Counted from the stretch's first letter, positions 1,897 through 61,500 are shown. The stretch is 64,000 nt of DNA from Epiperipatus broadwayi (GCA_028023455.1 JAQFVV010000005.1:8680001-8744000), one strand, 5' to 3'. The notes: generated by a model from the letters alone, not told the origin. Numbers and translations: made by a program.

Positions 1897-1922
1897 CTGA
1901 TATCTGGGTGCAGTGCACTCAG

Positions 1923-4424: not shown

Positions 4425-4445
4425 TTTTGGGTTTTTTTTTTTTCC

Positions 4446-4523
<78 letters not shown>

Positions 4524-8169: not shown

Positions 8170-8190
8170 TTGGTCACCCCTGACCTATAG
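8170..8190 (+). mobile_element. 3' TIR of the second hAT element plus one TSD half
   Basis: TTGGTCACCCCTG (reverse complement CAGGGGTGACCAA) ends at 8182 and is followed by ACCTATAG (central TA, Buster-type). The 5' TIR was not found. Confidence 0.6.
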
Positions 8191-8259
8191 GGATATGAGG
8201 AAAAGAGGGCAATTAATCCCTTATTTAAGAAAATACATTCGCCCACAATAATGACTTAG

Positions 8260-12500: not shown

Positions 12501-12721
12501 ATTAGATATATGAGATTCGTGTCTTAGTTTTATTTAGTAAGAATAGTTAGTTTTATAAAATTCTGATTTATTGTAGATAATTCCCGACTTATGTTATAGT
12601 TTGTTCGTAATTTTTACATGTCTTAATTTGGTACTTGTGAGTTTTGAAACTAATCAAGATGGCAGCCTGAATTTTTGATAAATATTGTTTTGAGGTCTAT
12701 TATCCATTGAAAATGTGTTTG

Positions 12722-13146
12722 GGTAAACATGAACTGTCCAGGTCATGACAAAATTCGAATTTTTGTTTCAAGTCTTTCTCACCAGAGTGTTTCTTGTCAA
12801 ATTACTGTCTATTGTAGTTTTCACTTATACAAAAGATACAATTTGCAAAGCAAATTCCTATACATATCCACACACAAAATGTGGAAAATATGTGGATGAG
12901 AGCTAAACGCAAGCTCAAACATCAGTGTGGCACCAGCAGTACTTTATTCGAATCCTACCTACAGAAATGTGCTTTTAGGACTCTCTACAAGACTGATGCC
13001 ATCTTTGTGAATTTTATCACTATTATAAGCAAAAACTACAATAGACAGTAATTATGAATGAACTTATTAAACTACAATGGACAGTAATTATGAATGAACT
13101 TATTACGGAATATGCTTAAAAGGTTGACTGTGTAATATGCGGCCGG
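12722..13146 (+). mobile_element. Merlin/IS1595-like DNA transposon copy A, left part (internally deleted, interrupted by Gypsy elements)
   Basis: Starts GGTAAACATGAACTGTCCAGG and contains a transposase C-terminus. By alignment with the minus copy at 21317-21695 it resumes at 19700. Confidence 0.65.
12869..13051 (+). pseudogene. Merlin (DDE_Tnp_IS1595) transposase C-terminal fragment
   Basis: HTQNVENMWMRAKRKLKHQCGTSSTLFESYLQKCAFR...YNRQ*, matching the HTQ.IE..W...K...R..G......YL C-terminal motif of the family. Confidence 0.7.
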
Positions 13147-13179
13147 CCACACAAGTGGACGCACAATATTGTTGCTGGA

Positions 13180-13197
13180 TGGCGCAGTCGACAGGAT
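13180..13197 (+). promoter_or_regulatory. Primer-binding site, complementary to a tRNA-Ser-type 3' end
   Basis: TGGCGCAGTCGACAGGAT is the reverse complement of ATCCTGTCGACTGCGCCA. It lies ~90 bp upstream of the gag ATG. Confidence 0.75.
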
Positions 13198-13287
13198 CCT
13201 CATATTTAGGATAGGATACAGATTCCAGGATATATAATCTAAAATGTATTACTGGAAATTTAATGCTGGTAGACATAATCGAAAAAC

Positions 13288-14050
13288 ATGGCCATTTCCA
13301 CATAAAACTTACGAGAGTTTGATGTGAGTAATCCTTCAGGATGGAATTTATATGTGGAGCAGTTGGACTGCTTTATGTGTCTTAGTAAGATAGAAGATGA
13401 GAAGTTGAAAGTCTCAACTTTATTATTTTATGCTGGAACTGATGTTGTGCAAATTGACAAGCAGCTATGTGATACAAAGATTCCCAAAGATTGTGCCATA
13501 TAATGAATTAGTAGAAAAACTAACTGTATTTTCAGCTGGAAGTCACAAAGAGGATATAGATAGCTCGCTTAAGATTCCAAATGAGAAGGCAGTTATCTCA
13601 GGAGACATGTCAGGAATACAACCTGGCCTTGTGATGATGTGCTAGGAATTGATTTATTGGGAAGACACACTGTTAGATCAATTTCTATATGGTATGACAG
13701 ATCACCATTTGAGGAAAATGCTATTAAATGTAGGTGATATCACATTTAGGATGGCTGCGGAGAAGTGTATAGCACATGAGCTGACAATAGCTAATGCATC
13801 AGAATTCCAGAAAATTGGTAAAGAAGCTAATATAGAAGTTGTTATCAGAACTACACCAAATGAACTGATTTGCTACTGTTGTGGAATTGCTGGACATACT
13901 AAGGTGTACAGATATAAGAAGAAAAATTGTCGTGTTTGTGGTGGAAAAGGACATCTGGCCCATATGTACAAAAAGGGTAGTAAAGAAAATCAATGCCCAG
14001 ACTTTAAATCTGAACAGAAAGCAGCTGTTAAGAAATCCACAATTAACTCT
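13288..14050 (+). pseudogene. gag: Gag with two CCHC knuckles, disrupted
   Basis: ATG at 13288; WNLYVEQL; LLDQFLYGM; CYCCGIAGH...CRVCGGKGH. Confidence 0.85.
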
Positions 14051-14069
14051 TTGAAGAACATTGCAGATA

Positions 14070-17000
14070 ACCAAATTACCCTAGCAGTATCCATTTGGAA
14101 AGCAAAGTCACCATGGAAGTGGACAGCAGTGCCGGATTGTCTGTATTATCTTTGAAAGGTTGGGACCAAATAAATGCTAGAGCTCAGTAGAAAGTTAAAA
14201 TTGTGTAAAACAAATGTTATAGCTACAGATGTAAATGGTAATAAGATAGATCTTTGTGGAAAAGTTTGTGTTCCAGTAAAATTAAATCAGAAACAGAAAG
14301 TTTTGCCATTATACATTGTTAAGAGACCTTAGCCCTTTACTGGGTAGAAATTGGTTTCATTCTTTAGGTATCTGTGTAAAGATCATTAACAAATTTAAAT
14401 TAGAGACTGAGGTTTGAAATAAGTTCCCACAGCTATTCAACAAGGACATTGCTGTATTAAAAACAAGACCAGTGGATGTAGAATTGACTAATGGTGCACA
14501 GCCTATAGTTTGCAGACCTCGAAAAATTCCACTTGCTCTTGCTGACACCAAAGATAGAAGAAACTATTGCAGATTTCGTAGTGAAAGACATTTTGTCATC
14601 GGTGAAGGACTCGTTATGGGCTACTCCTGTAGTAGTAATTGTAAAATCAGATGGAATGATTCGGTTTTCTGGAGATTACCGAATCACTGTTAACAAGTAC
14701 ACTAATAAAAGTGCTTATCCAGTACCTAGTGTGCCCGAGATATTAGCATCATTACAAAAAGCCTCGTTCTTCGCAAAAATAGATCTGAAATCTACTTTCC
14801 ATCAAATTCCGGTTACTGAAAAAACTGCAAATCTGGTTACTGAAAAAACTGCAAATCTGTTAACACTCACTACTCATGTAGGACTATTTAAGTGTAATAG
14901 GCTACCTTTTGGGATTACTATAGCACCTTTATAAAGTCGAATCTCGTGTTATGATTTGTAGAGGTCTCTTGCTAAAAAATTAAGCACTCAAAGCACGTAC
15001 TAAAGTTTTAGCTTTATATAAGTATAGCACCTAATATTTTCCAAGCTAAAATGGATAAATTGTTTCAGAATATGGACGGTGTAATCCCATATCTAGATGA
15101 TATACTAATCTCTGCCCAATCTGAAGAAGAATTGGAAAAATGTGTAATGGCAGTTTGTGCAAAACTAAATCAAATTGGTGCTACCATAAATGCAGGAAAA
15201 TGTATCAGGTCCAATCCAGAAATTAAATTTCAGGGTCACATAATAAATAGACAGGGAAAATATCCTAATCCAGAAAAAGTAAGAGATGTGAAAAAAGCTG
15301 CTACACCAAAAAATGTTAAGGATTTACAAGCTTTCCTCAGATTATTGAATTTTTTTGAAAATTATCTATGTGGTAAAGCTCATTTTTTGACTCCGCTATA
15401 TGATTTACTGAGAAAAGGACAAAACTGGAAATGGTTGAATGAACAAAGAGTTGCTTTTGGAAAAGCAAAATATCTAGTGACATCTGAAACCCTATTAGCG
15501 CATTATTGTAGTGATCAGAAAGTAGTGATTATGACAGATGCTTCAGATCATGGAGTAGGGGCAGTAATCTCACATCTTATAGCTGGACAAGAAAGACCCA
15601 TAGTGTATGCTTCCAGAATGTTATCTTCAGTTGAAAAAAACTACAGTCAGCTTAACAAAGAGGCTTTGGCTATTATATTTGCAATCAAAAAGTTCCATCA
15701 ATATATTTATGGTCGCAGTTTTAAATTATTCACAGATCATCGTCCTTTGCTTGGAATTTTTGGAAAAAATAAAAAAATACCTGAGCAAGTTAGTCAAAGG
15801 CTTCTCAGATGGATTATCATTTTAGCTGCCTATGACTATGAACTACACTACAAACACGGAAAGGAGATCGCCCATGCTGATGCTTTGTCACGTTTGCCAG
15901 CTAGAGATAGTATACCATGAAAATTTGTTGAAGTTAATTTATTGGAAATTATTAAATTAACCGATAATCTAGATAGTGCAAAATGTTTTAAATGGACTGT
16001 AAAAGACTCTAGTTGCCGACAATTAAAAATTTGGATACGAAATGGATGGACAAATGGTTGACCAAACTATGTAACTATAGAAATCTGGAATGCACATCAT
16101 TCAACTATCTATTTGTAATGATTGCATAGTTACGAATGATCGTGTATTTATACCACTAGAGGGACACCAATAAGTGTTAAAAATGTTGCATACTGGTCAC
16201 TCAGGCATAGTATCCATGAAAGCTCTTGCACGTTCCTATGTTTGTGGCCGCATATAGATCAAAATATTGAAAGAACTGTAAAATTGTGCCATGATTGTCA
16301 GGTTGGAGCGAATTTGCCCAGTAAAATGTTTAAACCTGGGTGGAGGCTAAAAAACCCTGGGAAAGAATACATATAGATTTTGCTGGACCTGTAAATGGAT
16401 ATTTAATCTTAGTAGTAATAGACTTACAGTAAATGGGTCAAGTATAGAGTTGTAAGGACTACGAGTACCTGATGTACGATTAAAGCTTTACAAGAGATTT
16501 TGCCACCCACGGTTATCCATAGACATTAGTGTCTGATAATGGCACAGCATTTTCGTCTACTGATTTTGAATCGTATTTGCCAGAAAAAGATATTCGTAAC
16601 ATTCTAACGCCAGCTTATCACCCAGCTTCAAATGGACTAGCAGAAAAGGCAGTTCAAAATTTAAAATCAAGTTTGAAGAAAAGTAAAGACTTAACATGGA
16701 TGAAGTGCTAGTTGATCTCCAGTGGAGTTGTTGTTTAATAGAACATGTTGGACACATCTATCTAAATTACTACCAAAAACAAAGGAAGGTCCATATCATA
16801 TAGAATCCCATTGTTCTGCTCCTCAAAGATTCATGATGGGCGAAAATGTATGGGTTTGTGATTATGGATATCAAGGATTATTACCAGTAGTACATCTGAA
16901 GTACCTACGATTAATAAAACTTGATAATGAATTACTTGTAAGACGTCATATGCTATGACCAACATGGACAAAAAAGAATCGGTTAAAAAGGAAACCCAAT

Positions 17001-17160
17001 GGGACTTATTGCCTAGAGCAGAGCTAGATAATCTGCCTCCCTTAACCCAAGAGAAATTATTGCCTGCAGATCAAATGATGCCAAAAGGTGACGATGCGGA
17101 CCCTGACCCGGATGACTCTAGTAAAACGATTGATCCTATTCCCGAAAGCTGTATTCCATG
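14070..17160 (+). pseudogene. pol: Pol (protease, RT, RNase H, integrase), frameshifted
   Basis: MEVDSSAG (PR); WATPVVVIVKSDG..DYR and YLDDILI (RT); TDAS..YSQLNKEALAI..TDHRPL (RH); SDNGTAF..YHPASNGLAE (INT). Confidence 0.92.
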
Positions 17161-17174
17161 AAGTCAAAGAATCC

Positions 17175-17405
17175 GGAAGAAACCAGCTAAATTTAATGAT
17201 TATTTTCTAGAATAGGGGGAGATATGTGTAATATATAAACATTTATATATATATACGTACTTGACTCTATTTCTACAGGCGAGGTTTTTAGGAAGAAACC
17301 AGCTAAATTTAATGATTATTTTCTAGAATAGGGGGAGATATGTGTAACATATAAACATTTATATATATATACGTACTTGACTCTATTTCTACAGGCGAGG
17401 TTTTT
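17175..17405 (+). repeat. 116-bp tandem duplication spanning the PPT/LTR junction
   Basis: ggaagaaaccagctaaa... at 17175 and 17291. Confidence 0.9.
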
Positions 17406-17409
17406 TGTT

Positions 17410-18357
17410 TTCCTGGTTCTTTTTTGAACAAGCTGGGGTAATTATTTTTGACTTGCGATTCTATGTCGATTTTTTTTATTTTTATCATAATTTGATCAGA
17501 TTCGTCTATAGTAGCACTTTTTATGTAGCTATTTTCCATCGCTTTGCACGTAAATTCTCTGTTCGGTTTTGTATGGTGGTGCCATCTTTCGGGATACTCA
17601 GTTATTTTCCGATCAGATTAATCTATAGTAGCACTTTTTATGTAGCTACTTTCCATCACTCTGCACGACTTTGTATGGTGGTGCCATCTTTTGGGATACT
17701 CAGTTATTTTCCGATAACTTTCAGTTTCTGGTAAACTGCAATCCCGGGCTTTGTGACCAATTTTTCTACATCAAAAACATTTAATTTGTTTATCGGTTTT
17801 GGGTTTAACTCCAAACTGTTCTTGTGAAGCTTCTGAACTCTCTCGCTTGGTCAAGCTGCAATTCATAAGCTGTTGCACGTCTGATAGCTTCTTCATAGGT
17901 TACATCTTTTATTGCCAGTAAGATTTGTCTAAACTGGTCATCAATTATTCCGTATAATAGTTGTTCTAGAAGGGCTTCTTTTAAATATTTACCGTAAAGG
18001 CATGGCTTTGCCATCTCTTAAACCAATGTCATATTCTTTTATTTTCTCATTCTTTCTTTGCCTTCTGCCTCTAAAGTGCAATCGAGCAATAAACTTGGAT
18101 GGCTGGGGATTAAAATATTCATTTAGCTGTGTTACGAGCTCATCATATTTCTGTGTCTCCGGCGAATTTCCACATAGTTTGTTCACTATTTCGATTACTC
18201 TCTCGCCTGCAAAGCAAAGTAATGAGGCTACTTTTACAGTATTCTCCATAATACTATTTAGTATAAAGTAGTTTTTTATTCTCTGAACATACAGTGACCA
18301 ATCACTCAGATCTTTTATATTAAATTCACAAATAAAAACTTGCGATATGCTCACCAT
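17410..18357 (-). pseudogene. gag: Gag of a second Gypsy element B (5' portion only)
   Basis: DWSLYVQRIKNYF...ARLHFRGRRQ; LLEQLLYGIIDD. Homologous in pattern to gag A. It carries an internal ~115-bp tandem duplication at ~17490-17715. Confidence 0.8.
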
Positions 18358-18420
18358 TTCTCTATTAATTCGAATCTACTTACGCTTTGTCTCAGCTTGC
18401 TGTTTAGGCAATTATTTGCA

Positions 18421-18554
18421 GATTCGATCCTATGATGACCGAACCAATTTTTAATGCAGTTCCATTCCTGTATTAACTGCCACTTTCTTTGATTCGATTC
18501 CTGTGCCGACTGTGCCAATATCTTTCAGGTTCTATTCCTGTCATTACTGCGCCA
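18421..18554 (-). repeat. Array of four PBS-like motifs with 35-37-nt spacing
   Basis: Minus-strand TGG starts at 18554, 18517, 18482 and 18446, each followed by ...(C/T)AGGA(A)T(C/A/G)GAA(T)C. Confidence 0.7.
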
Positions 18555-18557
18555 ATA

Positions 18558-18992
18558 TGCTGTGTCTTATGACCAGCGAGTAAATAAATGGACAAAGGCA
18601 GAAATTGAGAGGTAAGATTATAGTTTAATACAAATAATTTTAACTATATGCATGGCCTATTATAAGGCATAATAAAATAATAAAAGGTCATGGTGACCTG
18701 CATATAAATACCCTAGTCCTGCTTTTGGACTTACAGAGACAGGAGTCTCTGACTATAATTAAAACTCAGAACATACTCAGCACAATTAAATCAGGTTATG
18801 GGGGTTTATATACCCCTCAAGACTTCTGGAGTCTTTTACATTCCTAACCATATATGATGTTTTCTCTTACGTTTTTACACACACGCAGTATTTTCATATT
18901 TCTCACCATATATGGTATTTTACATAGTTTTCTGACCCTATAAGATCAGCTGGGCTTTCTATTATTATACAACTTTCTATGATTTAACAACA
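18558..18992 (-). mobile_element. Probable 5' LTR of Gypsy B
   Basis: Minus strand TGTTGT...ACAGCA, then 3 nt, then TGGCGCAGT. There is an ATTAAA signal near the 3' end. No second LTR is available to confirm the boundaries. Confidence 0.5.
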
Positions 18993-19190
18993 TTGCAATT
19001 TTACACAATCGTTATTCTTAATTACTATACAGTTATTTTACATATTTATTATACATTACAGTTATTACTTTTATTCTACATTTATACAATTATTATTGTT
19101 TTACATATTCGTTATACAGTATTTATACAATTATTATTATTTACATATTCATTATACATTATGTGTTTATACATTGACCTTGAATACTGC
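18993..19190. repeat. Degenerate AT/ATT-rich microsatellite
   Basis: Repeating tta/tat/aca motifs, almost no G. Confidence 0.6.
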
Positions 19191-19699
19191 AGTTCTGTAA
19201 TAAAGTTAAAGTAAATTATCTGTATTAATTAAAAGACAAGTCGATTGAAGAGTTTCTAGTGGATTCTGCGCAGTAATAATATTTGGTTTCTATCGTTACG
19301 CTATATTCTAAAAAGGTTTTAAAGACAACGGTTTCTTTTGATTAACAAACTGAAATTATAGTTACAGTTATAGTACATATTAAAGAGAAATACTAAATTG
19401 GGAATCACTCCTAAAGTGCTTACTACGTAAGTAGACTATATGAGAAAGAAATAAGACAGTTCTAAATTTAGTAAACTAATAACTGTATAATGTGCTATTT
19501 GCTAAACGCTGAATTATATATTTATATTCATTACAAATTCTAATTAAAGGATGTGTTATCAACTTTAGTTATACGTGTATGCAGGCCTGTTTATGTCTAT
19601 AGTATTAATAATTAATATAATATTTAATTACTCTTACCTGGGTTTATGTTTATTTCTAGACGCTACCACAGTTGAGTTAAACTCCCTGTGGACACAGCA

Positions 19700-19887
19700 G
19701 TTATTATTTTAATAAATTATTTTTTATCTGATATTTTTTGTTATTAATTATTTTTTATAATATAATTTTATGCCGCCGTGTATTTGCTATTTCACAACAA
19801 ATTTTAAAATAATTCGACAAGAAACACTATGGTGAAACAAATTTGAACTACAAAACTTTGTCGTGACCTGGACAGTTCATGTTTACC
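19700..19887 (+). mobile_element. Merlin-like copy A, right end; inverted repeat of 21317-21515
   Basis: Ends ...GTCGTGACCTGGACAGTTCATGTTTACC. About 190 bp align in reverse with 21317-21515. Confidence 0.75.
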
Positions 19888-20579
19888 GAAAATTTTATCA
19901 TCATCAGTAGTAGTGGCCATTCACTTAACACAATTTATTCTAGTATTACAATTTTAGATCTACTGTTCATACAATTTCATCCCAGCAAAATAACGAGTGC
20001 TATTACTTTCAACAGTCCTCACTTTATATGTAGCGAGGATTATGACAAATATTAAATATGTATTTTACACAACAGAATTTTTTACTGTACAATTTAGTCC
20101 TATAGCTAGCCTAGCCTCCCAAAGATAAAATACAGTATTGTATTAGTTTTTTTTTCCATTATTTACAACCGTTTTTACAACAAAAACAAATTTTTAGCCA
20201 GTTTAAAACAAAAAATAATCGAGTAACTTTTGAAAAATTCATATTGAATATTATATTGATGATTACATAATAAAAATGAATACAGCCTAAGCGTGAAGTT
20301 AGTTATGATATCTACTTTATTAAAGGCAGTAATAAGAAATGTTTAAAACAAAACAAAACAGTATTTTCATTTTATTCAACTTCCGAAACCCTAAACAAGG
20401 CAAAACTCTCCATACAGTAGTGCCACCCTGTGCCAACCAGAGTAATTACCCTAGTGGTAATTTTTCGTTCAAATACATTTTTTTAAAATTAGTGTCCTCT
20501 AGTAGGAAATTTTCGATAATTTAAAAAATATGATCCTCATTTATTAATTTCATAAAGAGAAAATTAGACAGGTAAAATT

Positions 20580-23301: not shown

Positions 23302-26300
23302 ATGGTTGATTTAGATATAAGTTAGATGTGGAGAGGGAATGGTTTTGTAAGATTAGTGGTAAGAAAGTTTGTTATAAACGTAATGGAGAAGGAAGCAAAA
23401 GAATTTATAAAAGTAGTTAGGAAAGAAGAAATTGTTAAAATTGGGTTTTTGAATCTGCAAGGTGGTAGGAGACCAGAAAAATGGCTGGAATTAAATAAAG
23501 CAATTGAAAATGAAGGGCTTGAGGTATTAGCAATAGTGGAAACTCATCTAAGAGAAGAAGAAGAACCAATTTTGGAAGAGGTAGTATGGCAGGGTATAAA
23601 CAGAAAAGAAAAAAGGGGTGGTGGTATAGGTGTTATATCGAAAAAAAATTTAAATACTGTTAAATGTCAAGAACATTTGTGGTTTGAAATAAGGTTGGGT
23701 AGACAAGAATGGATGGTGGCTGTAGTGTATATCGCCACTGGAGATAGTCAAACTGTAATGGAATGGAACAATAGTATATATGAATGCCTAGTTAAGGATA
23801 TACAGAGTTTTAAAGAAAAGGGGAAGAGAATAATGGTTATAGGGGATATGAATGGGCATATTGAAGAAATTGCTGATGTAGATAATAAGAATGGTCAGTT
23901 TTTGAAGGAATTTTGTCAAAGAGTAAATTTGAGCATTGGGAATTTATCAAATGTATATGATGGACAATACACATGGTCTAGGAATAATGTATTTCACCCA
24001 ATAGATTATGTATTGGTAGAAAAAGAGGGAATGAATAAAATACGAAAAATTAAGGTGTTTGATAATGAAGAGAGCGTGTGTAATAGTGATCATAACTTCA
24101 TTGTAATAGAAATGGTTAGTAATGTGATGGAGGATAGAAATAAATGTAGAAATAATAGTGAAAGATGTGGATGGAGAGTGAATGATAAGAATAAGTTGGA
24201 AGAGTATAAAATAAAAGTTGAAGAAATCATGGAGCAGTTGGTTGGGGATGAGTATAAGGACTGGTGTGGTGAAGTAGAAAAAGTGGCAAATAGGGTTTTA
24301 GTCGAGAATATGAAGAAGAATAAAAATAATAAAAAAATGAGAGTTAGTAAAAGTGTAAAAGAGAGGAAAAAAGCATGCAGAGAATATAAGTGTGCTATTA
24401 AGAATAAAGAAAGTGAAAATGATATTAATGCTAAATGGGGAAAGTACTTGGAAAAGAAGAAGCTAGCTAAAATGGATAATTATAGAGAGAGGATGAAGTT
24501 AAATAATAAATTGTTGGAGGATATTAATAAAAGTGGAAGAGATGGAAGTAAAAAATTTTGGAATTACATTAAAAGGAGAAATGTAGGGGAAAGAGAGATA
24601 GTATTAATAGATGATGAGGGAATAGAATGTAGCTCTAGAGGCGAGCTAGAGAAAATCTTAAATAGATATGTAATGTATATAGAAAAGATGTTAGATGTGA
24701 AGGAATTAGTGATAGAAAACATGAAAGCAGTTAGTAGTGGGAATATTACGTTCACAAAAAATGAATTGAATGAGGCAGGAAAGAGATTGAAAAGTGGAAG
24801 CGAGAGGTTTAGATGGATGGGCAGCAGAGATGGTAATGAATTTAGGGCATAGAGCAAAAACAAAGTTATTATCATGTTTTAATAAGATGGCGCAGAAGAC
24901 AGTTTTTCGGGTAGTTGGAGTAATACAAGAATAAGATTATTATTTAAAGGAAAGGGTAAGGATTGTAGAAAGTTAAATAATTATAGACCGATAGCAGTAA
25001 CATCAGTTTTATATAAAGTTTTCGCATATATGGTAGCTGGAAGAGTTGTAAAATGGATGGAAGAGAATAATGTAGTGGGGGAAATGCAAGGAGGTTTTAG
25101 GTCAGATAGGCGTATAGGAGATAGTTTTTTGTAGTTACACAACTTATGGAGATGAGTAGGAATTCAGGTAGATCATTATATATGAGTTTTATAAATATAG
25201 AGAAAGCATATGATAGAGTAAATAGAAATAGATTATGGGTAAGATTAGCCAATTTGGGAATGGATGAAGCTTTAGTAAATATTATTAAGAAATTATATGA
25301 CAATAATTATTATACTTACCAATTAGGGGATATAGAATCAGTTAAAGTTAAAAATGGAGTGGGATTAAGGCAAGGATGCCCTATGTCACCGATTTTGTTT
25401 TTGTTGTTTTTGAGTGAAATGGAAAAAGCAATAGAAAGACTAGGAAGAGAGGTAGAGATACCATTAATAGGTGGCAAAGGAGTATATACTTTGTCGGGTC
25501 TTTTTTTTTGCAGATGATATCTTTTTATGTGCAGAAAGAAGAGAAGATATGGATATTATGTTGAGGACATGTGCAAGGGTGGGTAAAGAGATGGGGATTA
25601 AATTTAGTGAAGAAAAATCAAATATAATGATGGTTAATACTGGGGAAAGAGAGGATGTAGTTTTTTTATTGGGGGATATAAAGCTAAGTGTGGTGGATAG
25701 ATATAGGCATTTGGGAATCATCTTATGTAATCAGGAAAATTGCTTGGTTGAATGGGAGAAAAAATTGGTAAATGAAGCAAAGAAAAGAAAAGGTTTGGTA
25801 AAGAAACTAACAGTATTTTCATATAATAAATATGATGTAGCTAGAATTATATGGAAGTTGCAGTAGCAGGGTTAACATATGGTAATGATGCATTATGTGT
25901 TAGTAAAAGGATTTTAGATTATTTAGAGAAAGTACAAAGGGAAGTAGGAAGACATGCATTAGATGCAGAGATGTGGACAGCAAAGGAGGCAATTCAAGGA
26001 GAAATGGGATGGTCAAGTTTCTATATGAGAGATGAATAAGCATTTATTTTATAACGTCCTGCGTGTGATTATAATTACGATAGAATGACAGCCTTCTCAC
26101 AGCGTCTGCGCAATTAGCTTAACAGGCTGTCATTCTATCATAATTATATGAGAGATGCAAAAAGTAAAATGAAAATGTTTGGTAGGTTGCAGTTTATGGA
26201 TAGTAAAAGAATAGCCAAAATAGTGTTATGAGTAAAGGGCAGGTAACAAGATGGGTGAGAAAGGTAATGTGGTATGCAAAAGATTTGGATAAAGAATTTT

Positions 26301-28210: not shown

Positions 28211-28281
28211 TGCGTTGACCGGGAAGCAACCCGGGCCAGCTGCTTGGAAGGCAGCTATGCTAATCACTAGCCCATCAACGC
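28211..28281 (-). tRNA. tRNA-Gly(TCC), probable pseudogene
   Basis: GCGTTGATGGGCTAGTGATTAGCATAGCTGCCTTCCAAGCAGCTGGCCCGGGTTGCTTCCCGGTCAACGCA. Acceptor and anticodon stems are intact, the T-loop/B-box is damaged and there is no nearby T-run terminator. Confidence 0.85.
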
Positions 28282-36722: not shown

Positions 36723-39669
36723 TCAACCATTATCAATCCACTGCAGGATGAAGGTCTCCAAGTTTAATCCATCTTCTCGATCTTTAGCTTCTCTTTTCCA
36801 CAACATACCTGCACATTTTCTTATTTCGTCCATCTATCTCACATATGGTCTTTTTATGGGTCTTTTACAATCTCCTGGAATCCAGTTTAAAATTTCAATT
36901 GTCCATCTATTATCATTTCTTCCAGCAATATGTCCAGCCCAACTCCATTTCAATCTTAATTTTTTCAATAAGGTCAGTAACACCTGTTTGTTGTCTTACC
37001 CATACATAGTGTTTTCGATCTCTTGTTACTCCCAACATACATCTCTCCATACTCCTTTGAGTGGTCTGAAGTCTCTGTATTGCTCTTCTATTAAGTGTCC
37101 AAGTCTCAGATCCATAAGTAAGAACTGGTAAAACACATTTGTTAAAAACCATTCTTTTCAAACACATAGGCATATTTCCTTTTAGTATCAAGTTATTTCT
37201 ACCAAAAGCATTCCAACCAAGTTTAATTCTATGATTAATTTCCTCCATTATGTTTCCATCTGTATTAATCTGACCAAGGTATTTGTAACTGTTAACTGCT
37301 TCTAATTCTTCATAATCAATCTTTATTTTCATATTTTGAGCAAATTGATTAAACATTCCTTTAGTCTTTTTAACATTTATCTTTAGTCCTACTTTCATCT
37401 GCTAACTCCTGCAAGATTTCCTGCAGCTCTGAAGCATTATTTGCAAAAACAACTACATCATCTGCAAAATCTAAATGACTTAAATACTCTCCATTTACTT
37501 TCATTCCTTTAGTTTCCCATTTTAATCCACAAAATACTTCTTGCAGCACTGCTGTAAAAAGTTTTGGAGATATAGTCACCTTGTCTTACATCTTTCTCAA
37601 TGTTGATTTTTCCAGTATCATTATGTAACCTAATTGTTGCTGTTGCATTTTTATAAATATTCTTTAAAATATGACAATATCCTGGATCTATACCTTGATG
37701 ATCCAATGCTTTAATCACTGAAGAAATGTGTATAGAATCAAATGCCTTTTCATAATCTACAAATCCAAAACATAATGACAACTCATATTCATTTGTCCTT
37801 TCTATGACTTCTCTCAATACCTGGATATGATCTATTGTACTAAAACCACTTTTAAATCCAGCTTGTTCTTTTGGTTGGTGGAAATCCAAATTTCTCTGTA
37901 GACGAGTTGTAATTTTCTTGGTAAAAATTTTATATAAAACTTATAAAAGGCTGATAGATCTGTAATTTCTAATATCTTCTTTATCACCTTTTTTAAATAT
38001 TAATATTATTACTGCATTCTTCCAATCTTCCGGTACATCTTTATCATTTAGACATTTGGTGCTAAAATTGTTTCTGTTTCTTCACCTGCTTCTTTTAATA
38101 TATCAATTATAATTCCATCATTTCCTGGAGCCTTTCCTTTCTTCATACATTTAATTGCATGTCTCACTTCATTTAAAATTCTGGGCAATTTGGAAGATGT
38201 AATAGATATAGGAGGTACTTGTTCTTTATTACTATATAATTCTTGATAAAAATCTACCAATTTCATGATGTCATCTCTCTTTTTAGTAATAATTCCATCT
38301 TTTATTCTTATTGCAGATATAAATTTCCTACCAATACCAAAATGTTGTTTAACATTCTTGAGACTTTTATTTTCTTCTACAGCTTTCCTTGCTTTTTCAC
38401 AGTTATACTTTCTTATATCATTTTCAACTCTTTTCCGTACCATTTTACAAAATTCGAGATATTCATTTTAATACATCATTTTTGTATATCTTCATATTCC
38501 TTCTTCATAAATTCTCTAGTCTCAGTAGAAATTTTATTAGTCAATTGCTGCTTTTTTCTACCAGCTATCTTTGTTGCAGTTTTTAAAAGTGTATCAGTTA
38601 TTTTCATATTAATTTCATTCAAATCTGAATCATGTTCAAAATCTCCTAACACTTGAAACCTATTTGTAAGTTCTAATTTAAATTCATTAGAATGTTTCTG
38701 AAGATTAGGAATATCAACTGTAAATATCGTTTTTCTTAATAATTTTTGTCTCTCTAGTTTTACATTAACACGTAACTTACACCTTACTAATCGATGATCA
38801 CTTGCTGTGTTAAATTTATTAAGAACATTACAATCTTGAAATATGTATTTCCTGTTAGTCAAAATATAATCCAATTCTGCTGTACCTTCATTTGGATGCT
38901 TCCATGTCCATTTCCTTCTAACATTTTTCTCAAAAAATGAATTCATAATATAAAGTTTTTCTTTTTCTGCAAACTCCAGAAGTCTATGTCCTCTCTCATT
39001 TCTATTACCATAACCAAAATTACCTACAGCAATTTCATCTTTCATTTGTCTACCAATTCTAGCATTAAAATTAAAGTCTCCCATAACAATTTTAAAATGT
39101 TTACTCTGATCAAAAGCCTTTTGTACATCCATATAAAAATCTTTTACTACTTCATCACTATGAGAACTTGTTGGGGCATAAACCTGAATTATCTGCATTT
39201 GGTATCTGCTATTAAGTTGTATAACTAATCTTGCCACTCTGTCCGATACACCATCAATCTCCACAATATTGTTCTTCCACTTTTTATTTATAATGAATCC
39301 TACTCCACTTGTATTTCCAATATGTGTGCCTTTATAATAGAGTATATGTCCACTTTTTAAATCAATTGTTTCTTCTTTTTTTCTAACTTCACAAAGTCCA
39401 ATAATGTCCCATTTAATATAAGACAGTTCTTCTTCTAATTCTTGCAATCTTCCTTCACTTGAAAGTGATCTGCAGTTGTAAATACCTAAATAAAAAGTTG
39501 TCATCAAATGGCAGCCTGGGTCCGCAATCTGGATTCTTAGCACCTTCGGCCACCAACTGCTGCCTTGGTTGGTGACTTTACAGCCTCCTGAGAATAAGGG
39601 CCATGCTTTATTTTTTCTGTCATAATTGTATATATGTATTGGAAAAATATCATTTACACAAACATTCAT
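36723..39669 (-). pseudogene. RTE ORF (APE endonuclease + RT), frameshifted
   Basis: YNCRSL, GLCEVR, VYAPTS, GDFN, LDYIL, SDHR; QAGFKSG, FVDYEKAFDS, VRQGD, FADD; ends ...FILQWIDNG*. Confidence 0.93.
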
Positions 39670-53239: not shown

Positions 53240-54928
53240 ATGCATTCAATAGAAAAACTTTTTCAGTGTGATATTTGTGGTTTCAAAACTGTCTTTGAAC
53301 GTAATTTGAAAGGGCATTTATTAACTCATGGAGAAAAAACTTTCCAATGCAGTTTTTGTGATTATAAGGCATTTACCAAACCAGCTGTAAAAATACATGA
53401 AAAATTGCATACAGGACAGAAATCTTTACTCTGCCATTTCTGCGATTACAAGGCTTCTACAAAATGGTATTTAAAATTACATGTAATTTCTCATACTGGA
53501 GAAAAACTTTTTCAGTGTAGTTTGTGTAATTACAATACCGCTGTAAAACAACTTTTCAAGCGACATCAATTTATTCATACAGGGAAGAAACCTTTTCTCT
53601 GTGATTTATGTGATTACAAGACTACTACAAATTGGAATTTAAAAGCACATGCAATATCTCATACTGGAGAAAAACCTTTTCATTGTACTTTGTGCAATTA
53701 TATGACAATTAAAAAAGGCAATTTAAAACTTCATGAAAAAATTCATGCAATAGAAAAACCTTTTGAGTGTAGTACTTGCAATTACAAAACTGCTTTTAAA
53801 CATAGTTTGAAAGGACATGAAAAAATTCATGCAATAGAAAAACCTTTCAAGTGCAGTACTTGCGATTACAAAACTGCTTTTAAACATAGTTTGAAAGGAC
53901 ATGAATTAACTCATGAAAAATTAACTCATGAAAAACTTTTTCAATGCACTTTATGTGATTACAAGGCACCTACAAAAAGCTATTTAAAATTTCATGAAAA
54001 AATTCATGCAATAGAAAAACCTTTTGAGTGCAGTACTTGTGATTACAAAACTGCTTTTAAACATAGATTGAAAAGACATGAATTAACTCATGAAAAAATT
54101 TTGCAGTGCACTTTATGTGATTACAAGGCAGCTACAAAAACTATTTTTGATTTACATGAAAGATACCATTCAAGTAAAATAATTTTTCAGTGTGATTTGT
54201 GTGATTACAAGACGGGTGTAAAAGGTAGTTTCAAAAGACATCAATTATTTCATACAGGTGAAAAACCTTTCCAATGCAATTCCTGTGATTATAGGACTGC
54301 AACAAAAGCAAACTTAAAAGTACATATAAGATCTCATACTGGAGAAAAACCTTTTAAATGTAGTTTTTGTATTTACAAGACAACTACAAAAGGAGCTTTA
54401 AAAATACATGAAAAAAATCATAAAAGAGAAAAAAATTATCAGTGCAGTTTTTGTGATTACAAGACTATTGCAAGTAGTAAGTTTAAACTACATAAACAAT
54501 CTCATATAGCAAATATACTGTATCATTGTAGTATATGCGATTTTGAGACTAATGTAAAACACATACTCAAAAAGCATAAATTAACTCATACAAAGATCAA
54601 TTCTTTTCATGGTAATTTCTGTAATGATATGTCTTCTATAAAAGCTTATTTTAAAATACGTAAAAAACTTCATTTAGAAGAAAACCTTTATCATTGCAAC
54701 TTGTGCAATTACAAGACCACAACCAAATATAATTTCAAAATGCATGAAATAGTTCATACTGAGGAAAAATCTTTAAACTGGAGTTTATTTGGAGAAAATG
54801 ATATATGTGATAATTTAAAGAACAACAAATATAAAGAAAATCAAGAAAAACAGATAATCAGAGAAGGAATATTTAAGTGCTGTTTATGTGATTATAAAGC
54901 TACAGAAAAATGGAAAATCATAAAATGA
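53240..54928 (+). CDS. Tandem C2H2 zinc-finger protein (562 aa; 17 intact CxxC(D/N)YK-type fingers plus degenerate ones)
   Basis: Repeated F.C..CDYK......LK.H...H with HTGEKPF linkers. The last finger is frameshift-truncated. It may be one exon or a decaying gene. Confidence 0.85.
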   Translation: MHSIEKLFQCDICGFKTVFERNLKGHLLTHGEKTFQCSFCDYKAFTKPAVKIHEKLHTGQKSLLCHFCDYKASTKWYLKLHVISHTGEKLFQCSLCNYNTAVKQLFKRHQFIHTGKKPFLCDLCDYKTTTNWNLKAHAISHTGEKPFHCTLCNYMTIKKGNLKLHEKIHAIEKPFECSTCNYKTAFKHSLKGHEKIHAIEKPFKCSTCDYKTAFKHSLKGHELTHEKLTHEKLFQCTLCDYKAPTKSYLKFHEKIHAIEKPFECSTCDYKTAFKHRLKRHELTHEKILQCTLCDYKAATKTIFDLHERYHSSKIIFQCDLCDYKTGVKGSFKRHQLFHTGEKPFQCNSCDYRTATKANLKVHIRSHTGEKPFKCSFCIYKTTTKGALKIHEKNHKREKNYQCSFCDYKTIASSKFKLHKQSHIANILYHCSICDFETNVKHILKKHKLTHTKINSFHGNFCNDMSSIKAYFKIRKKLHLEENLYHCNLCNYKTTTKYNFKMHEIVHTEEKSLNWSLFGENDICDNLKNNKYKENQEKQIIREGIFKCCLCDYKATEKWKIIK

Positions 54929-55414
54929 ATCATTTCAGTGATCATGAAATCCTTCAGATTCTCATACAATTCACTTAAAATGATGTTTCATTTTTTTTTA
55001 AAAAAATGTTTAACAATGAAAATTTGTATTATTTTAATAAAATTTTTAAAAAAATGCTTTTCATTAAAACTTTTATACCATCACAAAACTAATAAAGATT
55101 ACAGAATTTTATATGAAAAATATTAAATTTGATTGAAAAATATAAATTGTGTTTTTAAGATTTTACTACTGATTGGCATTTGATTTTAAAATGCGAGGTT
55201 ATTGAAAGTGAGAAATAGATCAGTTATCAAATGAAATGAGAACTAGATAAATCATCTGCTGAAGAGAAAAGTAGATCAGTTATCTATTGAAATTAAAAAA
55301 GTGAGAATTACATCAGTTATCAACTGAAGAAACAAATAGTTACAGAATTCAGCTGAAATGAGAATCATATCAGTCATCAGCAGAAAAGGTGTCTTAATAA
55401 TTATTATGATATTG

Positions 55415-55722
55415 AAACAGGCAAAACTCACTATACATATTGCCACACACAGCAAGCTAGAGTAATCAATCGATGCCAGAAAGCTTGTGCATAAAATCCC
55501 CATCTAGTGCCTACCCATCCAATATCCCCAGACTAGTTTCTGGCTTGTGGCCTTCGTCAGTGAGAAGCCTTGGATCTGAGAGCACTACATAAGCCAGAAA
55601 CTAGTCCGGGGATATTGGATGAGTAGGCACTAGATGGGGATTTTATGCACAAGCCTTCTGGCATCCATTGATTACTCTAGCTTGCTGTGTGTGGCAATAT
55701 GTATAGTGAGTTTTGCCTGTTT
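55415..55722. mobile_element. 308-bp foldback element (135-bp arms, 38-nt loop) with 45-nt tail and 14-bp TSD
   Basis: Arms 55415-55549 and 55588-55722. TSD TTATTATGATATTG at 55401-55414 and 55768-55781. Confidence 0.9.
55517..55575 (-). ncRNA. Type I hammerhead ribozyme (family 2)
   Basis: ATCCAA-GGC-TTCTCA-CTGACGA-A-GGC-CACAA-GCC-A-GAA-ACTAGT-C-TGGGGA-TA-TTGGAT. Predicted cut between 55531 and 55530. Confidence 0.82.
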
Positions 55723-55794
55723 TACAACAGTTATACACAAGCATAAGAGGTGGTGGTCATGTGATGTTTATTATGATATTGCTTTTTTAATGAC

Positions 55795-55959
55795 ACAGGC
55801 AAAACTCTCCATACAATATTGACACTTAGTGCAAGCCAGAGTAATCAATGGGTGCCAGAAGGCTTGTGCATAAAATTCCCATCTAGTGCCAGCCTTCTGG
55901 CATCCATTGATTACTCTGGCTTCACTGAGTGGCAATACTGTATGGAGAGTTTTGCCTGT
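55795..55959. mobile_element. Centre-deleted foldback copy of the same family with tail and 12-bp TSD
   Basis: ACAGGCAAAACTCTCCATAC...GTATGGAGAGTTTTGCCTGT. TSD GCTTTTTTAATG at 55781-55792 and 56006-56017. The HHR region is absent. Confidence 0.85.
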
Positions 55960-57189
55960 TTCAATAACAATTATAAGCAAGCATAAGAAAAGGTGATCTT
56001 GTGATGCTTTTTTAATGCAGTTCAATTTATTTAATATTGCTGCCATGTTTACTAATTACATAAAAATATTTTTTTGAGTTTAACAATTCTTAGTGAAACG
56101 TTTAATATATTTAATGTGTGTTAGAATTGGATTACATGCATATATCTATATTTAAGATTTTTTATTGTAAACAGAACTCCCATGGATATCATAAGTCCAT
56201 TATTTTATTGAAAGTACTTGTTGGATTTCTGAACAAATATATGAGTAATATCTATTTTTTACTCGATAATATTTCCCATTAAGAATAGTGTATTTAATCG
56301 CTTAACATTCTCATCTGTACACAGAGGCAAAACTTGCCATACAGTAGTGCCACTCATCATGTGATGTTTGATCATTCTCAACTTTCTGAATTTTTACCAA
56401 TTTAGCAATTCCTTTTTGTTAAATTCAAAATACTTCAGATATAAATTTTGATTTTCGGAACAGAATTTGAATTCTGAATGGAGTTTTAAACTTTTCTGCT
56501 GAAAACAATTGTAATTATGTCTTTCTAACCAAACATGACATCTTTCTAAATTATTTATCCTCAAATAAAGAGGCAGAATAAGCTAAATAGAAATAGATTT
56601 TAAGAAAATAAAAACTTTTTAATTCTTGATTGTTATTGTCGATAGAATGATAGAACTGAGGAAATAAAATTAATAAAATAAATAGAAAAGGAATTCATAT
56701 TCTGTTTGACTAGAGTATGTAAAGAAAAAAAAATTAAGGGTATTAAATATAAGTTTGATTGTTAGCTAATTTTAAAGTCAAACATGGAGTTAGAGATTTG
56801 TAAAACTATTGTTATTTTAAAATTTATATGCTTAGTTTTTCTATAAAAGATATAAGAAATAATTGGTGTTTAATTGACCCCCTGCCCTCCCTAATATTCT
56901 TTGATTTTTATATCTTTAGCTTAGGTGTTCAAAATAAACAACTTTTATCTTCTTATAGAGAAAGTGGAATATAATTATATAATCAATAAAATTAGATAAT
57001 CAATAATGTTTCCAAAACACTAAATGAACCTTTTTGTAAAAATATATATATATGAAAAACAAAAAACACAAGTTAAAACTTGCTAATGCTTGTATTTATG
57101 ACAATAGATGGCGTTCTACCAAAAACACTGTCAAGCATAGGTTTGTTTACATAAACGTCAGAGCAAGCATTCACTATCTCTAACTTTAG

Positions 57190-57245
57190 TTCCACCTTCA
57201 GATCATGATTTCAAGCTATTTGCTATCATCAGTGAATGACAGGAA
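57190..57245 (-). ncRNA. Type I hammerhead ribozyme (family 1), copy 1
   Basis: TTCC-TGT-CATTCA-CTGATGA-T-AGC-AAATA-GCT-T-GAA-ATCATGAT-C-TGAAGG-T-GGAA; one stem I mismatch. Confidence 0.85.
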
Positions 57246-57591
57246 TAAGAAACTAGATCTAAACACAAACTCTGAGCGTTTATGAAACAGTTTCTATTCA
57301 GCTTGCAAGCGTGAATCTTTTAGACACGTAATGTCTTCAAACTCAGCATAGCAAGCCAGATAGCTACATGGGTCTGATATCAGTTCAGCATCACCACATA
57401 GTAGAAGCCTCTGCAATATATATCATTGCAAGAAAGACCTCAAAGGTACATTTATGAAAAACAAAAAACACAAGTTAAAACTTGCTAATGCTTGTATTTA
57501 TGACAATAGATGGTGTTCTACCAAAAACACCGTCAAGCGTAGGTTTGTTTACATAAACATCAGAGCAAGCATTCACTATCTCTAACTTTAG

Positions 57592-57647
57592 TTCCACCTT
57601 CAGATCATGATTTCAAGCTATTTGCTATCGTCAGTGAAGGACAGGAA
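57592..57647 (-). ncRNA. Type I hammerhead ribozyme (family 1), copy 2
   Basis: TTCC-TGT-CCTTCA-CTGACGA-T-AGC-AAATA-GCT-T-GAA-ATCATGAT-C-TGAAGG-T-GGAA; perfect stem I. Confidence 0.9.
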
Positions 57648-58093
57648 TAAGAAACTAGATCTAAACACAAACTCTGAGCGTTTATGAAACAGTTTCTATT
57701 CAGCTTGCAAGCGTGAATCTTTTAGACACGTAATGTCTTCAAACTCAGCATAGCAAGCCAGATAGCTACATGGGTCTGATATCAGTTCAGCATCACCACA
57801 TAGTAGAAGCCTCTGCAATATATATCATTGCAAGAAAGACCTCAGAGGCACAATTGAGCCACTGTAATATATATCATTGCAAGAAAGACCTCAAAGGTAC
57901 ATTTATGAAAAGCAAGTTTGTTTTTCATAAGAGGCTTCTACTATGTGGTGATGCTGAACTGATATCAGACATAGCTATCTGGCTTGCTATGCTGAGTTTG
58001 ACGACATTAATGTGTCTAAAAGATTCACACTTGCAAGCTGAATAGAAACTGTTTCATAAACGCTCAGAGTTTGTGTTTAGATCTAGTTTCTTA

Positions 58094-58149
58094 TTCCTGT
58101 CCTTCACTGACGATAGCAAATAGCTTGAAATCATGATCTGAAGGTGGAA
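58094..58149 (+). ncRNA. Type I hammerhead ribozyme (family 1), copy 3
   Basis: Identical to copy 2. Predicted cut after AUC at 58138. Confidence 0.9.
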
Positions 58150-58484
58150 CTAAAGTTAGAGATAGTGAATGCTTGCTCTGATGTTTATGTAAACAAACCT
58201 ACGCTTGACAGTGTTTTTGGTAGAACACCATCTATTGTCATAAATACAAGCATTAGCAAGTTTTAACTTGTGTTTTTTTGTTTTCATAAATGTACCTTTG
58301 AGGTCTTTCTTGCAATGATATATATTGCAGAGGCTTCTACTATGTGGTGATGCTGAACTGATATCAGACCCATATAGCTATCTGGCTTGCTATGCTGAGT
58401 TTGAAGACATTACGTGTCTAAAAGAATCACGCTTGCAAGCTGAATAGAAACTGTTTCGTAAACGCTCAGAGTTTGTGTTTAGAT

Positions 58485-58528
58485 CTGACAATAGCAAATA
58501 GCTTGAAATCATGATCTGTAGGTGAAAC
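58485..58528 (+). ncRNA. Inactivated hammerhead (family 1), copy 4
   Basis: A 24-nt deletion removes the stem I 5' strand. Core is CTGACAA (G8A) and the stem I 3' strand is mutated. Confidence 0.75.
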
Positions 58529-61500
58529 TAAAGTTAGAGATAGTGAATGCTTGCTCTGACATTTATGTAAACAAACCTACGCTTGACAGTGTTTTTGGTA
58601 GAACGCCATCTATTGTCATATATATAAAAGTCCTTTTTTTTGGAAATACATTTGATTGTTTAAAATTAAATCAAATGAGATGTTTATTAAAAACGTAATT
58701 AGAAATTATTGTTGGATTAAGACAGAACAAAGAAAAAATAAAAGAAGAAGAAAGAAACTGGAGCTAAGGTTGATGGGAAGATATGTTTTCATTATGCATT
58801 GGTATAGCTATATATGCAGGAGACGAAGAAGGAAAGAAAATGTTGAGTGAGAGTCAAAATGCCTGTAAAGAATATTAAGCGACTGAACGTGATAAGCAAG
58901 CTCATCAACTTGTAAAACATCAGAATTTTAGTAATTGTTTCTGAGTTGCAGTAATTCAGTGCTAGTTATTTGTCTTAAAAAGAATACTGCTATTAGAAAT
59001 ATGTTTAAATGCTAAATTTATTAAACCACAATTGTAATGGTAAATTTGTGTATCTACCAAAGCTATGTGCTAAAACCACTAATATATTAACCAAAATTTT
59101 AGCCACGAAGCCTCTCCAAACATGAACCAATGTTTGTTACAAGTGTAAAAATACTGCTGTTTCAAAATATTGCTTTTGCTTCCATAGTAGAAGTATTTGC
59201 ATATTTTCTGTAATTAAATAATTTTGATATATTGTTAGCCATCCTATTACATAAATTTTTAATATTGTCAGCTGAAAATATTTAACTGGTTTTCTGTAGT
59301 TTACCAGGCAGTTCATCAGGAATAACTGATTTTTCCATTAGCTGTCTTACTGTTAGAAATGATAGTATAAAACTCTACTCAATTTATGATTTGGGAGTTT
59401 ACATTTTGAAACTAATTTATTGTGAAGATTGTTCTCTTGTCTTATAAGCAGTCACTTTGTGATGTTATTCATAGAAAACAGTTTATATATGGTATAGAGC
59501 AATGACATGTCTACTTTCAATCATTTTGGTAATGTATTTATTATTAGTAGTAACTGTTACCATTTGAAGGATTAGCATGGTCAATGTGTAGGTTTGATGA
59601 GGACATTTTTAAATTCTGGAGAATTACTGATTTTGTTTTTAGCTGTTGTATTTTATATTTCCAGACATTGATAGAAATTATATATTTAGACCATCATATG
59701 TATAATTCAGTCTACATTTTCAATCTCACAATTTCTCTTTAGCCAGTGCAATAAGTTGAGCAGATGAGACAGTCTTCTGCATATATGATTACTTTAGATA
59801 TCCAATCCAACATTTCACCCTATATATCTAATATGAGTGATCCATTTCACTTTCCTATTTGCCAGCCTATTTGGATCCAAACTGTCTCTAAATCCTAAAT
59901 GGACATTAGTTCATCTAGCAACAAACTTGTTGATATTTCCATTATTTTAAATATCTATTATGGTAGAATTGTGACTCTTTTTATTTAACTCCTGTGAATT
60001 TAGTATAAGGCACATAACTAATGGCCTCAATATGAAATAAGCACATGAAGGCTAGAGGAAATCATTTTCTGTTAATATGTCCAACAATGACTTGTTTTTG
60101 AACTGCAAAATAAAGGATTCACCGTACAGTTTGTTATGAAATTTTTTATTCTTGAAATGACAGGATTTTTCCATTAATGTGAACACATATCTGTGTATAG
60201 ATGTAATGAGTGCTCAAAAGGAAAATGAGTATTTGTATGGGAAAGTTGGTAGACCATTATAACTAAATATTAAAGATTTTTTTGAATTATAGTGGGTCAG
60301 TATGGGTTCTCAAAATCAAGTTGCATTTTTATCAAAGGGATTATGTAAAAATTTGCCTCCCTTGATTTTGTTATGTAAAAAGTTTTTAGAATAATTTGTA
60401 AGGTCTAGAAATGATTGGGTTTCCTTTTTTTTTATTTAAACTTTAAAACTTAAAGGACTGCCTTTATCTTATTTATTGTTGATGAATATCGTTAGCATTA
60501 AATTTTACAGTTTGTCTAAGAAATTCCAGTTTTTGATCTCAAAAATGGATTTATCTGAATTGATATTAATAACATCAATTGTAAATTTGTTAACAAATTT
60601 ATAGTGATTTGTTACAAATGACTAGGATCTTTTGTGACTAAAACTAAAGCAATACAATGCATCAGGGATCTCATGAGCAAAGTTCATTATATTCTTGACT
60701 CATACACTTTCCATCTCAATACATTACTTATGGAAATTTTTAAAGTCACAATAATGACTAACTTTTTATGCTTTGTGGTAATTCTCCTAATTGGACAGGT
60801 TCAAAGTATACTTTTGCAGTATTAAAAAGTTTTAGAATGAAAGCATATCTATATAGTGAGTTGTCTGTTAATACTTGAGTGTTGACTAATGTATAGTTGA
60901 GTTTTCAAAATGGCACATTACCCATCCACCCATTCTTATAAATGCTAATTTTTTGATCAGATTTATTAATTGGGTTTCCTGTGAAAAGTAATAAGTAATT
61001 TGTAATTCAAACTGTTCCTATAAACAAATTTGACCTTGTAAAATAAATTTCATTGAAATATTATTTCTGGCTGCACTTTTGTCATATTGTAACTACTGTA
61101 ACTCATTCTACTTTTTATTTTTTATGAGAATTCTGTCATAATTGCATCGTTTTTGCCCTGCAACCATATCAGTTCTGTTGTATGTGAACATTTGAGTTAG
61201 TGCATTAGAAATTAGTTATACAACTTTTCATAAACAAAGAGTTTAGGTTTTTTATAACTTCTTTTAATTTTCATCTCTAATTAATCAAATCTTTCTGTAA
61301 AATGGTTACTAATAGGCATTATTAACTGGGTTAAACCAGAACCTGGAATAAATAGCACATTGATTTGATTAGGTGGCATACAATATGATCTGTGTGTAGT
61401 TTTATGGCTATACATCACACTGTGATGATTATTTTATAATTTTTTTTGTTCATAATTCAACCTATGTTGAATTATTTATATCAGCACCATAACCAAAAGT

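Follow-up and report, generated by a model that had tools for sequence, protein, structure and literature searches.

Among animal repeats that carry hammerhead ribozymes (HHRs), the classical satellites are newt satellite 2, Schistosoma Sm-alpha and cave-cricket pDo500. The animal non-long terminal repeat (non-LTR) retrozymes, which were described in 2020, are repeats of 150-450 bp with type I HHRs, a low GC content and circular RNA products (Cervera & de la Pena, PMC7229834). The hammerhead of the axolotl retrozyme Ax353 (Rtz_353 or HHR_Amex2) reads CUGAUGA-U-GCC-CACUA-GGC-U-GAAA-CACGUGU-A (PMC7229834, supplement); as a monomer it reaches 22% self-cleavage in 1 h, and it is much more efficient in dimeric constructs (PMC7229834). 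In the mussel retrozyme Mg353, helix III is an 8-nt palindrome, ACGCGCGU, which is followed by C (PMC7229834). Retrozymes are an abundant animal source of ribozyme-made circular RNA, and there is no settled account of their copying back into DNA. In this study, we analyzed a stretch of 64,000 nt of Epiperipatus broadwayi (GCA_028023455.1 JAQFVV010000005.1:8680001-8744000), hereafter the window, whose positions serve as coordinates throughout, and we describe a 402-nt hammerhead repeat located at 57051-58620. We believe that this locus is probably one insertion of a high-copy, non-coding hammerhead retroelement of the animal non-LTR retrozyme type, which lies beside or inside a (TA)n tract and consists of two head-to-head dimers. 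The 402-nt repeat is a new family within this known class.

The repeat has a period of 402 nt at 57051-57852, where Tandem Repeats Finder (TRF) reports 2.0 copies with 98% matches, and a repeat search of the window returns two inverted arms of 475 nt each, 57255-57729 and 58012-58486, that are 99% complementary. Opposite the tandem dimer lies an inverted second dimer at 57917-58620, which is more decayed. Each unit harbors one HHR motif, with a period of 402 nt and 2.0 copies per arm. The original prediction, which was made from the sequence of this stretch, had proposed a double-dimer foldback, and both the arrangement and its coordinates are right. Counting monomer positions from the U right after the cleavage site (position 1), the locus is composed as follows.

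57042-57053: (AT)6 tract adjoining the left outer end, where the element ends in the sense strand with ...UUUUUCAUA
57045-57915, sense on the minus strand: left arm of approximately 2.0 units, from TRF, alignment and blastn of the monomer against the window
57808-57901: monomer positions ~150-198 duplicated in tandem (49 nt, 1.9 copies, 91%), at the inner end of the left arm
57903-57930: central head-to-head junction, a small palindrome almost without a spacer
57917-58627, sense on the plus strand: right arm, from alignment and blastn of the monomer against the window
58618-58626: (AT)n tract adjoining the right outer end, where the element ends in the sense strand with ...UUGUCAUA

From the center outward, the left arm comprises monomer positions 139-198, the 49-nt tandem duplication, 150-402, 1-402 and 1-152/156; the right arm comprises 138-151, a deletion of ~39 nt (~152-190), 191-402, 1-402 with a 24-nt deletion, and 1-104/111. 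At the junction, a single G (57916) separates the 5′ end of the left arm (position 139, 57915) from the 5′ end of the right arm (position 138, 57917). Both outer 3′ ends carry a CAUA motif followed by (TA)n, and all four termini of the two arms fall within monomer positions 104-152, off the cleavage site. The right arm has 10 private substitutions compared with 3 in the left arm, and it also has three deletions. The GC content of the unit is 36%, and blastn of the monomer found no further copy elsewhere in the 64-kb window. The longest open reading frame (ORF) of the locus encodes 91 aa and spans the central junction, in agreement with the earlier statement that no credible ORF is present. The insertion at 57051-58620 is young, which likewise supports what had been said of its copies.

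Most substitutions between the unit copies are CpG transitions, and five of the seven variable sites in the first 104 positions are changes from CpG to TpG or CpA. This excess suggests that the 402-nt repeats at 57051-58620 are, or were, cytosine-methylated. We also considered mirrored variants of the two arms as a proof of inverted duplication or of a shared multimeric template. Only 2 of the 16 variable sites are mirrored. These are CpG transitions in both cases, and at one site three copies mutated independently. Because most differences between the arms are recurrent CpG transitions, this test is not usable. The arms may have formed by snap-back synthesis, by twin priming or as a palindrome made at the DNA level.

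Canonical metazoan type I hammerheads have a helix I of 6 bp, a helix II of 4 positions, and a helix III of 1-2 bp whose small palindromic loop acts via a dimer, whereas in the minimal hammerheads of Penelope-like elements (PLEs), helix II is long, at 7-8 bp, and helix I is short (PMC4209133). The motif of the 402-nt unit fits the canonical architecture and not the minimal PLE type. Its 32-nt core, CUGANGA-UAGCAAAUAGCUU-GAAA-UCAUGAU-C, is present four times in the locus.

57190-57245 (core 57201-57232), minus strand: hammerhead c1, core intact (CUGAUGA), cleavage at 57201/57200
57592-57647 (core 57603-57634), minus strand: hammerhead c2, intact, cleavage at 57603/57602
58094-58149 (core 58107-58138), plus strand: hammerhead c3, intact and identical to c2, cleavage at 58138/58139
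58485-58527 (core 58485-58516), plus strand: hammerhead c4, dead

The full conserved type I core, with A15.1-U16.1, and C17 are found in c1, c2 and c3, that is, in three of the four copies, and the claim of one type I HHR per monomer with an intact core in three of four therefore holds, although only c2 and c3 are wholly intact. Helix I of c1 contains one A.G mismatch (CAUUCA/UGAAGG). The fourth copy has lost G8 (G8>A, CUGACAA), carries a 24-nt deletion that took the 5′ strand of helix I, and has UGUAGG on the 3′ strand. The layout of c2 is UUCC-UGU-CCUUCA / CUGACGA / U-AGC-AAAUA-GCU-U / GAA / AUCAUGAU / C | UGAAGG-U-GGAA, in which helix I is open and, as in c3, pairs CCUUCA with UGAAGG (6 bp) and is extended over a small internal loop by UUCC/GGAA (4 bp). 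The second of the three helices has only 3 bp (AGC/GCU) over a U.U at 10.1/11.1. Helix III is, as had been noted, an 8-nt palindrome, which marks the motif as a dimer-dependent type I hammerhead: it can form 2 bp with a CAUG loop when it pairs in cis, or 8 bp when two copies pair with each other. When two 57-nt copies are folded together, the 8-bp palindrome pairs intermolecularly, and the predicted energy is -28.6 kcal/mol compared with 2 x -11.8 kcal/mol, such that the dimer is approximately 5 kcal/mol better.

A descriptor that required the core, a helix I of at least 5 bp, a helix II of at least 3 bp and a helix III of at least 2 bp was applied to the window and, as controls, to dinucleotide-shuffled 64-kb windows. 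It matched c2, c3 and a motif of unrelated sequence at 55531-55560 on the minus strand; the shuffled windows averaged 0.015 matches. Because two independent families are matched here against 0.015 hits per shuffled window, the hammerhead motif is not a chance match.

The motif at 55531-55560 (minus strand) belongs to a second, unrelated hammerhead family that occupies 55401-56017. It reads UUCUCA / CUGACGA / A-GGC-CACAA-GCC-A / GAA / ACUAGU / C / UGGGGA, and its layout is that of the 402-nt family, but its mismatch is A.A and its palindrome has 6 nt. The motif marks the center of an inverted repeat with head-to-head arms (55416-55722), of which the plus-strand arm begins inside the ribozyme. 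A second copy of this family at ~55780-55965 lacks the central part.

In a minus-strand transcript of the left arm, by analogy with validated retrozymes, the two hammerheads would pair via AUCAUGAU into a double hammerhead, which would cut after C57603 and C57201. The predicted product (57201-57602) is exactly 402 nt, and the computed length thus agrees with the exact monomer that cuts at 57603/57602 and 57201/57200 had been expected to release. Because the right arm has one working ribozyme, release of a monomer from this locus would be possible only for a left-arm transcript of the minus strand. The product would have 5′-OH and 2′,3′-cyclic phosphate ends and might be circularized by a host tRNA ligase of the RtcB type. 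Copies could then be reverse-transcribed and inserted by the reverse transcriptase (RT)/GIY-YIG endonuclease of a PLE, a machinery that characteristically leaves partial tandems and an adjacent inverted 5′-truncated copy.

The sense circle has a predicted minimum free energy (MFE) of -109.7 kcal/mol, with 65% of its nucleotides paired and a z-score of -4.5 against shuffles, and the z-score of the antisense circle is -2.7. The pairing of 58055-58069 with 58176-58189 across the ribozyme, from which a compact RNA had been proposed, is part of the circular MFE structure, and the predicted RNA is indeed compact and strongly self-paired. The suggestion of "viroid-like" replication, on the other hand, is without support because the ribozyme occurs on only one polarity. 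Nor does the present evidence support the idea that a long dsRNA hairpin from the inverted arms feeds small-RNA silencing.

The abundance of the family was measured as summed depths of assembler contigs at 85% identity or more, and the figures are rough because depth is not a copy number. In the DNA run X1, which is the probable source of the assembly, the single-copy flanks have a depth of 26-36, and the depths summed over the unit come to 0.18-2.1 million. The family thus amounts to roughly 10^4 copy-equivalents in the X1 source DNA, which is the outcome of the genome copy number check that had been proposed. Many X1 contigs bear the 402-nt family with differing flanks, which indicates dispersed copies. 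At least three other organisms, going by the labels of their runs, also have the family, and because a 439-nt contig of one of them, organism D, maps permuted, the copies of organism D are tandem (or circular). The fifth pair of helix I switches from C-G to U-A, with matching frequencies on the two strands: in X1, the 3′-strand change (57196 C>T) accounts for 46.5% and the 5′-strand change (57639 G>A) for 54%, and in organisms C and D, single contigs carry the two changes at once. This switch is suggestive of compensatory variation.

In two RNA-labelled runs, contig depth is 100-20,000 over the unit compared with 0-14 in the flanks; these are tandem-repeat contigs, which cannot display circularity. 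The profile of the RNA-labelled run X7 peaks approximately 20-fold over 57196-57204, the region of the cleavage site (4558-4694 compared with 224 and 759 alongside), whereas the DNA profile is flat. In contigs of X5 and X7, (TA)n lies directly upstream of distal helix I (AUUCCUGUC...), at 58092 / 57649. This tract is either a 5′-truncated insertion boundary or an internal microsatellite of a variant unit.

A number of points weigh against the insertion of a retrozyme. The G10.1-C11.1 pair that is usual at the base of helix II is not present, with U.U in its place, and helix II is weak. The Rfam hammerhead models (Hammerhead_1 and its relatives) give no match at the gathering score, and none is returned at E ≤ 10 either, whether for 1.9 kb or for 101 nt; the isolated motif is no more stable than shuffles (z -0.4 to -0.8), although this is expected for a dimer-dependent hammerhead. 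The covariation concerns one base pair and comes from summed contig depths rather than from an alignment of copies, and exact-pattern scans, which covered collections of metagenomes and of viral and prokaryotic genomes, returned no further members for it. The evidence from RNA consists of assembler contigs only, which hide RNA ends and circular junctions. Moreover, the ratio of the X7 to the X1 depth is ~3e-4 to 3e-3 for the 402-nt family and likewise for unrelated neighboring repeats; the evidence for RNA expression is therefore ambiguous and not a proof. Finally, neither the locus nor the 64-kb window contains a Penelope RT/GIY-YIG ORF, and the RVT_1 matches in the window accompany domains of the APE type (long interspersed nuclear elements, LINEs) or RNase H (LTR elements).

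Two of these points, the lack of an Rfam hammerhead match and a depth ratio that resembles that of other repeats, would equally suit an ordinary DNA satellite or minisatellite in which the hammerhead-like motif is a non-functional relic. Such a repeat would have spread by unequal exchange, extrachromosomal circles or segmental duplication, and the foldback would have arisen by palindrome formation at a broken AT-rich site. The arms do join at one shared monomer position across a spacer of 1 nt, as in hairpin-mediated inverted duplication, and local DNA-level amplification of retrozyme arrays is discussed in the Li/Pollet preprint. However, the motif has the full core and three helices in a layout that has been experimentally validated elsewhere, its chance expectation is 0.015 per window, one pair of helix I co-varies, and the sense fold is much stronger than the antisense fold. 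In addition, the arms stop at different outer positions (152 and 104) and mirroring of the flanks is not significant (p 0.1-0.17); therefore, the locus is not a simple inverted duplication of itself and its flank. We consider a satellite with a relic motif to be unlikely. An older palindrome or miniature inverted-repeat transposable element as the target of the insertion was also examined and rejected: the flanks match in inverted orientation over 31 nt at 74%, or over ~60 nt with gaps at ~75%, and the local alignment score is not significant (p 0.17 against shuffles and 0.10 against random window pairs).

According to Craig et al. (2021, 10.1101/2021.04.23.441226), PLE insertions consist of partial tandems that form pseudo-LTRs (pLTRs), often have an adjacent inverted 5′-truncated copy, and show a bias toward microsatellites; the pLTRs of canonical PLEs contain hammerheads. 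In Schistosoma, the hammerheads of PLEs are separated by 100-700 bp and lie on opposite strands (Cervera & de la Pena, 2014, PMC4209133), and a preprint from 2026 makes the case that the non-LTR retrozymes of animals arose from PLE pLTRs. Because the layout of the 402-nt repeat fits the published descriptions of PLE insertions and the neighboring hammerhead family is also head-to-head, its foldback is best read, by analogy, as the usual product of a PLE-style insertion. We infer that a PLE enzyme would be the mobilizing machinery.

The same hallmarks, that is, a tandem with an inverted 5′-truncated copy and microsatellite-adjacent ends, together with the opposite-strand hammerheads of Schistosoma PLEs, may at first sight indicate that the locus is a pair of pLTR fragments of an autonomous PLE whose coding part is absent from this copy, rather than a separate non-autonomous family. 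We regard this as quite improbable: the units follow each other head-to-tail with a period of 402 nt and no coding sequence between the hammerheads, the hammerhead is of the canonical retrozyme kind (helix I with 6 bp, helix II short) and not of the minimal PLE type, and there is no PLE ORF within the 64-kb window.

Inverted structures of the PLE type are known to confuse assemblies, and among the contigs displayed, none spans the central junction. If the inversion were an assembly artefact, the true locus would be a simple tandem array, and this would touch the foldback claim only. However, both outer junctions are found on contigs of single-copy depth. In each, the 3′ end that adjoins the flank faces outward, antisense on the left and sense on the right. 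Because the flanks carry 3′ ends of opposite sense, the orientation switch must lie between them, if they are neighbors. Private substitutions and indels separate the arms, which are therefore not a duplicated read, and the neighboring hammerhead family at 55416-55722 is likewise head-to-head. The foldback is present in the assembly, the flank contigs argue that the inversion is real, and an artefact is highly improbable.

The retrozyme insertion that we favor also bears on the template. Because all four ends lie off the cleavage site, a ribozyme-cleaved linear monomer was not the template, and a circle or a multimer fits. The evidence does not demonstrate the earlier proposal that a circle underwent rolling reverse transcription: the ends of the arms fit a circle, yet they fit a multimer equally. 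At the left boundary, two contigs of organism D end as well (loose ends 57037 and 57042), which suggests a preferred 3′ end. The CAUA/(TA)n ends, the termini off the cleavage site and the arms that meet at the same position with a 1-nt spacer raise a tentative and, in our opinion, rather doubtful idea, namely that the anatomy of the insertion records its mode of integration. A circular or multimeric RNA would have been reverse-transcribed from a microhomology primer, and a Penelope-type enzyme would then have made the second arm by snap-back. Should thousands of copies show the same pattern, they would provide the first evidence at sequence level of which template form and which enzyme mobilize animal retrozymes.

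Beyond the 402-nt repeat, the second hammerhead family at 55401-56017 has a summed X1 depth of ~10^7 compared with ~33 for single-copy sequence, and a further high-copy repeat (56272-56405, summed X1 depth ~2.8e5) lies between both hammerhead elements. Immediately upstream of these two elements, an uninterrupted ORF of 562 aa at 53240-54928 (plus strand) was considered as a Penelope RT beside the element; it encodes a multi-C2H2 zinc-finger protein instead. The remaining features of the window are the following.

14533-15920: remnant of an LTR-type RT and RNase H
23326-25866 and 38476-39669: remnants of LINE-type APE endonuclease and RT
28211-28281, minus strand: tRNA gene (Rfam, 37.9 bits), which by reading of its anticodon loop CUUCCAA is a putative tRNA-Gly(UCC)

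Taken alone, the locus is one more example of a described class, and its added value is an insertion anatomy that can be tested genome-wide. The insertion is clean and young, its ends and its head-to-head junction agree with the Penelope-like origin that has been proposed for animal retrozymes, and the locus adds a family with an unusually weak, dimer-dependent hammerhead. Since the curated Rfam models miss this hammerhead, genome annotation based on Rfam would overlook the 402-nt family.

Compared with PLE insertions, the locus has the same partial tandem and adjacent inverted 5′-truncated copy, a hammerhead in the repeated part, and microsatellite-adjacent ends. Unlike PLEs, it has no RT/GIY-YIG ORF, its hammerhead is canonical and not of the minimal kind, in which helix II has 7-8 bp, and a clear 'tail' of 30-40 bp was not recognized. 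The classical hammerhead satellites, which are tandem repeats of ~330-500 bp that give monomeric and multimeric RNAs and contain dimer-dependent hammerheads, resemble the 402-nt repeat in their tandem units and dimer-dependent hammerheads; however, they belong to other sequence families and form long blocks, whereas the arrays at this locus are short and dispersed (dimers).

Among the published retrozymes, the coral, mussel and axolotl units have no sequence similarity to the 402-nt unit, and its exact ribozyme sequence was found in no searchable paper. The likeness lies in the architecture. As in the axolotl HHR_Amex2, a U.U lies below a helix II of 3 bp with a 5-nt loop, and helix III is an 8-nt palindrome. 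The U.U in place of G10.1-C11.1 is therefore common to a hammerhead that is experimentally active, although helix II is weaker here (AGC/GCU) than in Ax353 and self-cleavage and circular RNA of the 402-nt unit are predictions. As in the mussel Mg353, the 8-nt palindromic helix III is followed by C17. The unit shares with the non-LTR retrozymes a type I HHR in a tandem repeat of 150-450 bp, a low GC content, a high copy number and a predicted highly self-paired monomer. It also shares with them the lack of an ORF or LTR; a primer binding site and a polypurine tract are likewise without a match, but no specific search was made for these two. The original prediction of an undescribed retrozyme family is therefore upheld as far as the retrozyme-type tandem HHR repeat and its dimer-dependent motif are concerned, but this family is not a new kind of element, and its place is among the animal retrozymes already described (PMC7229834).

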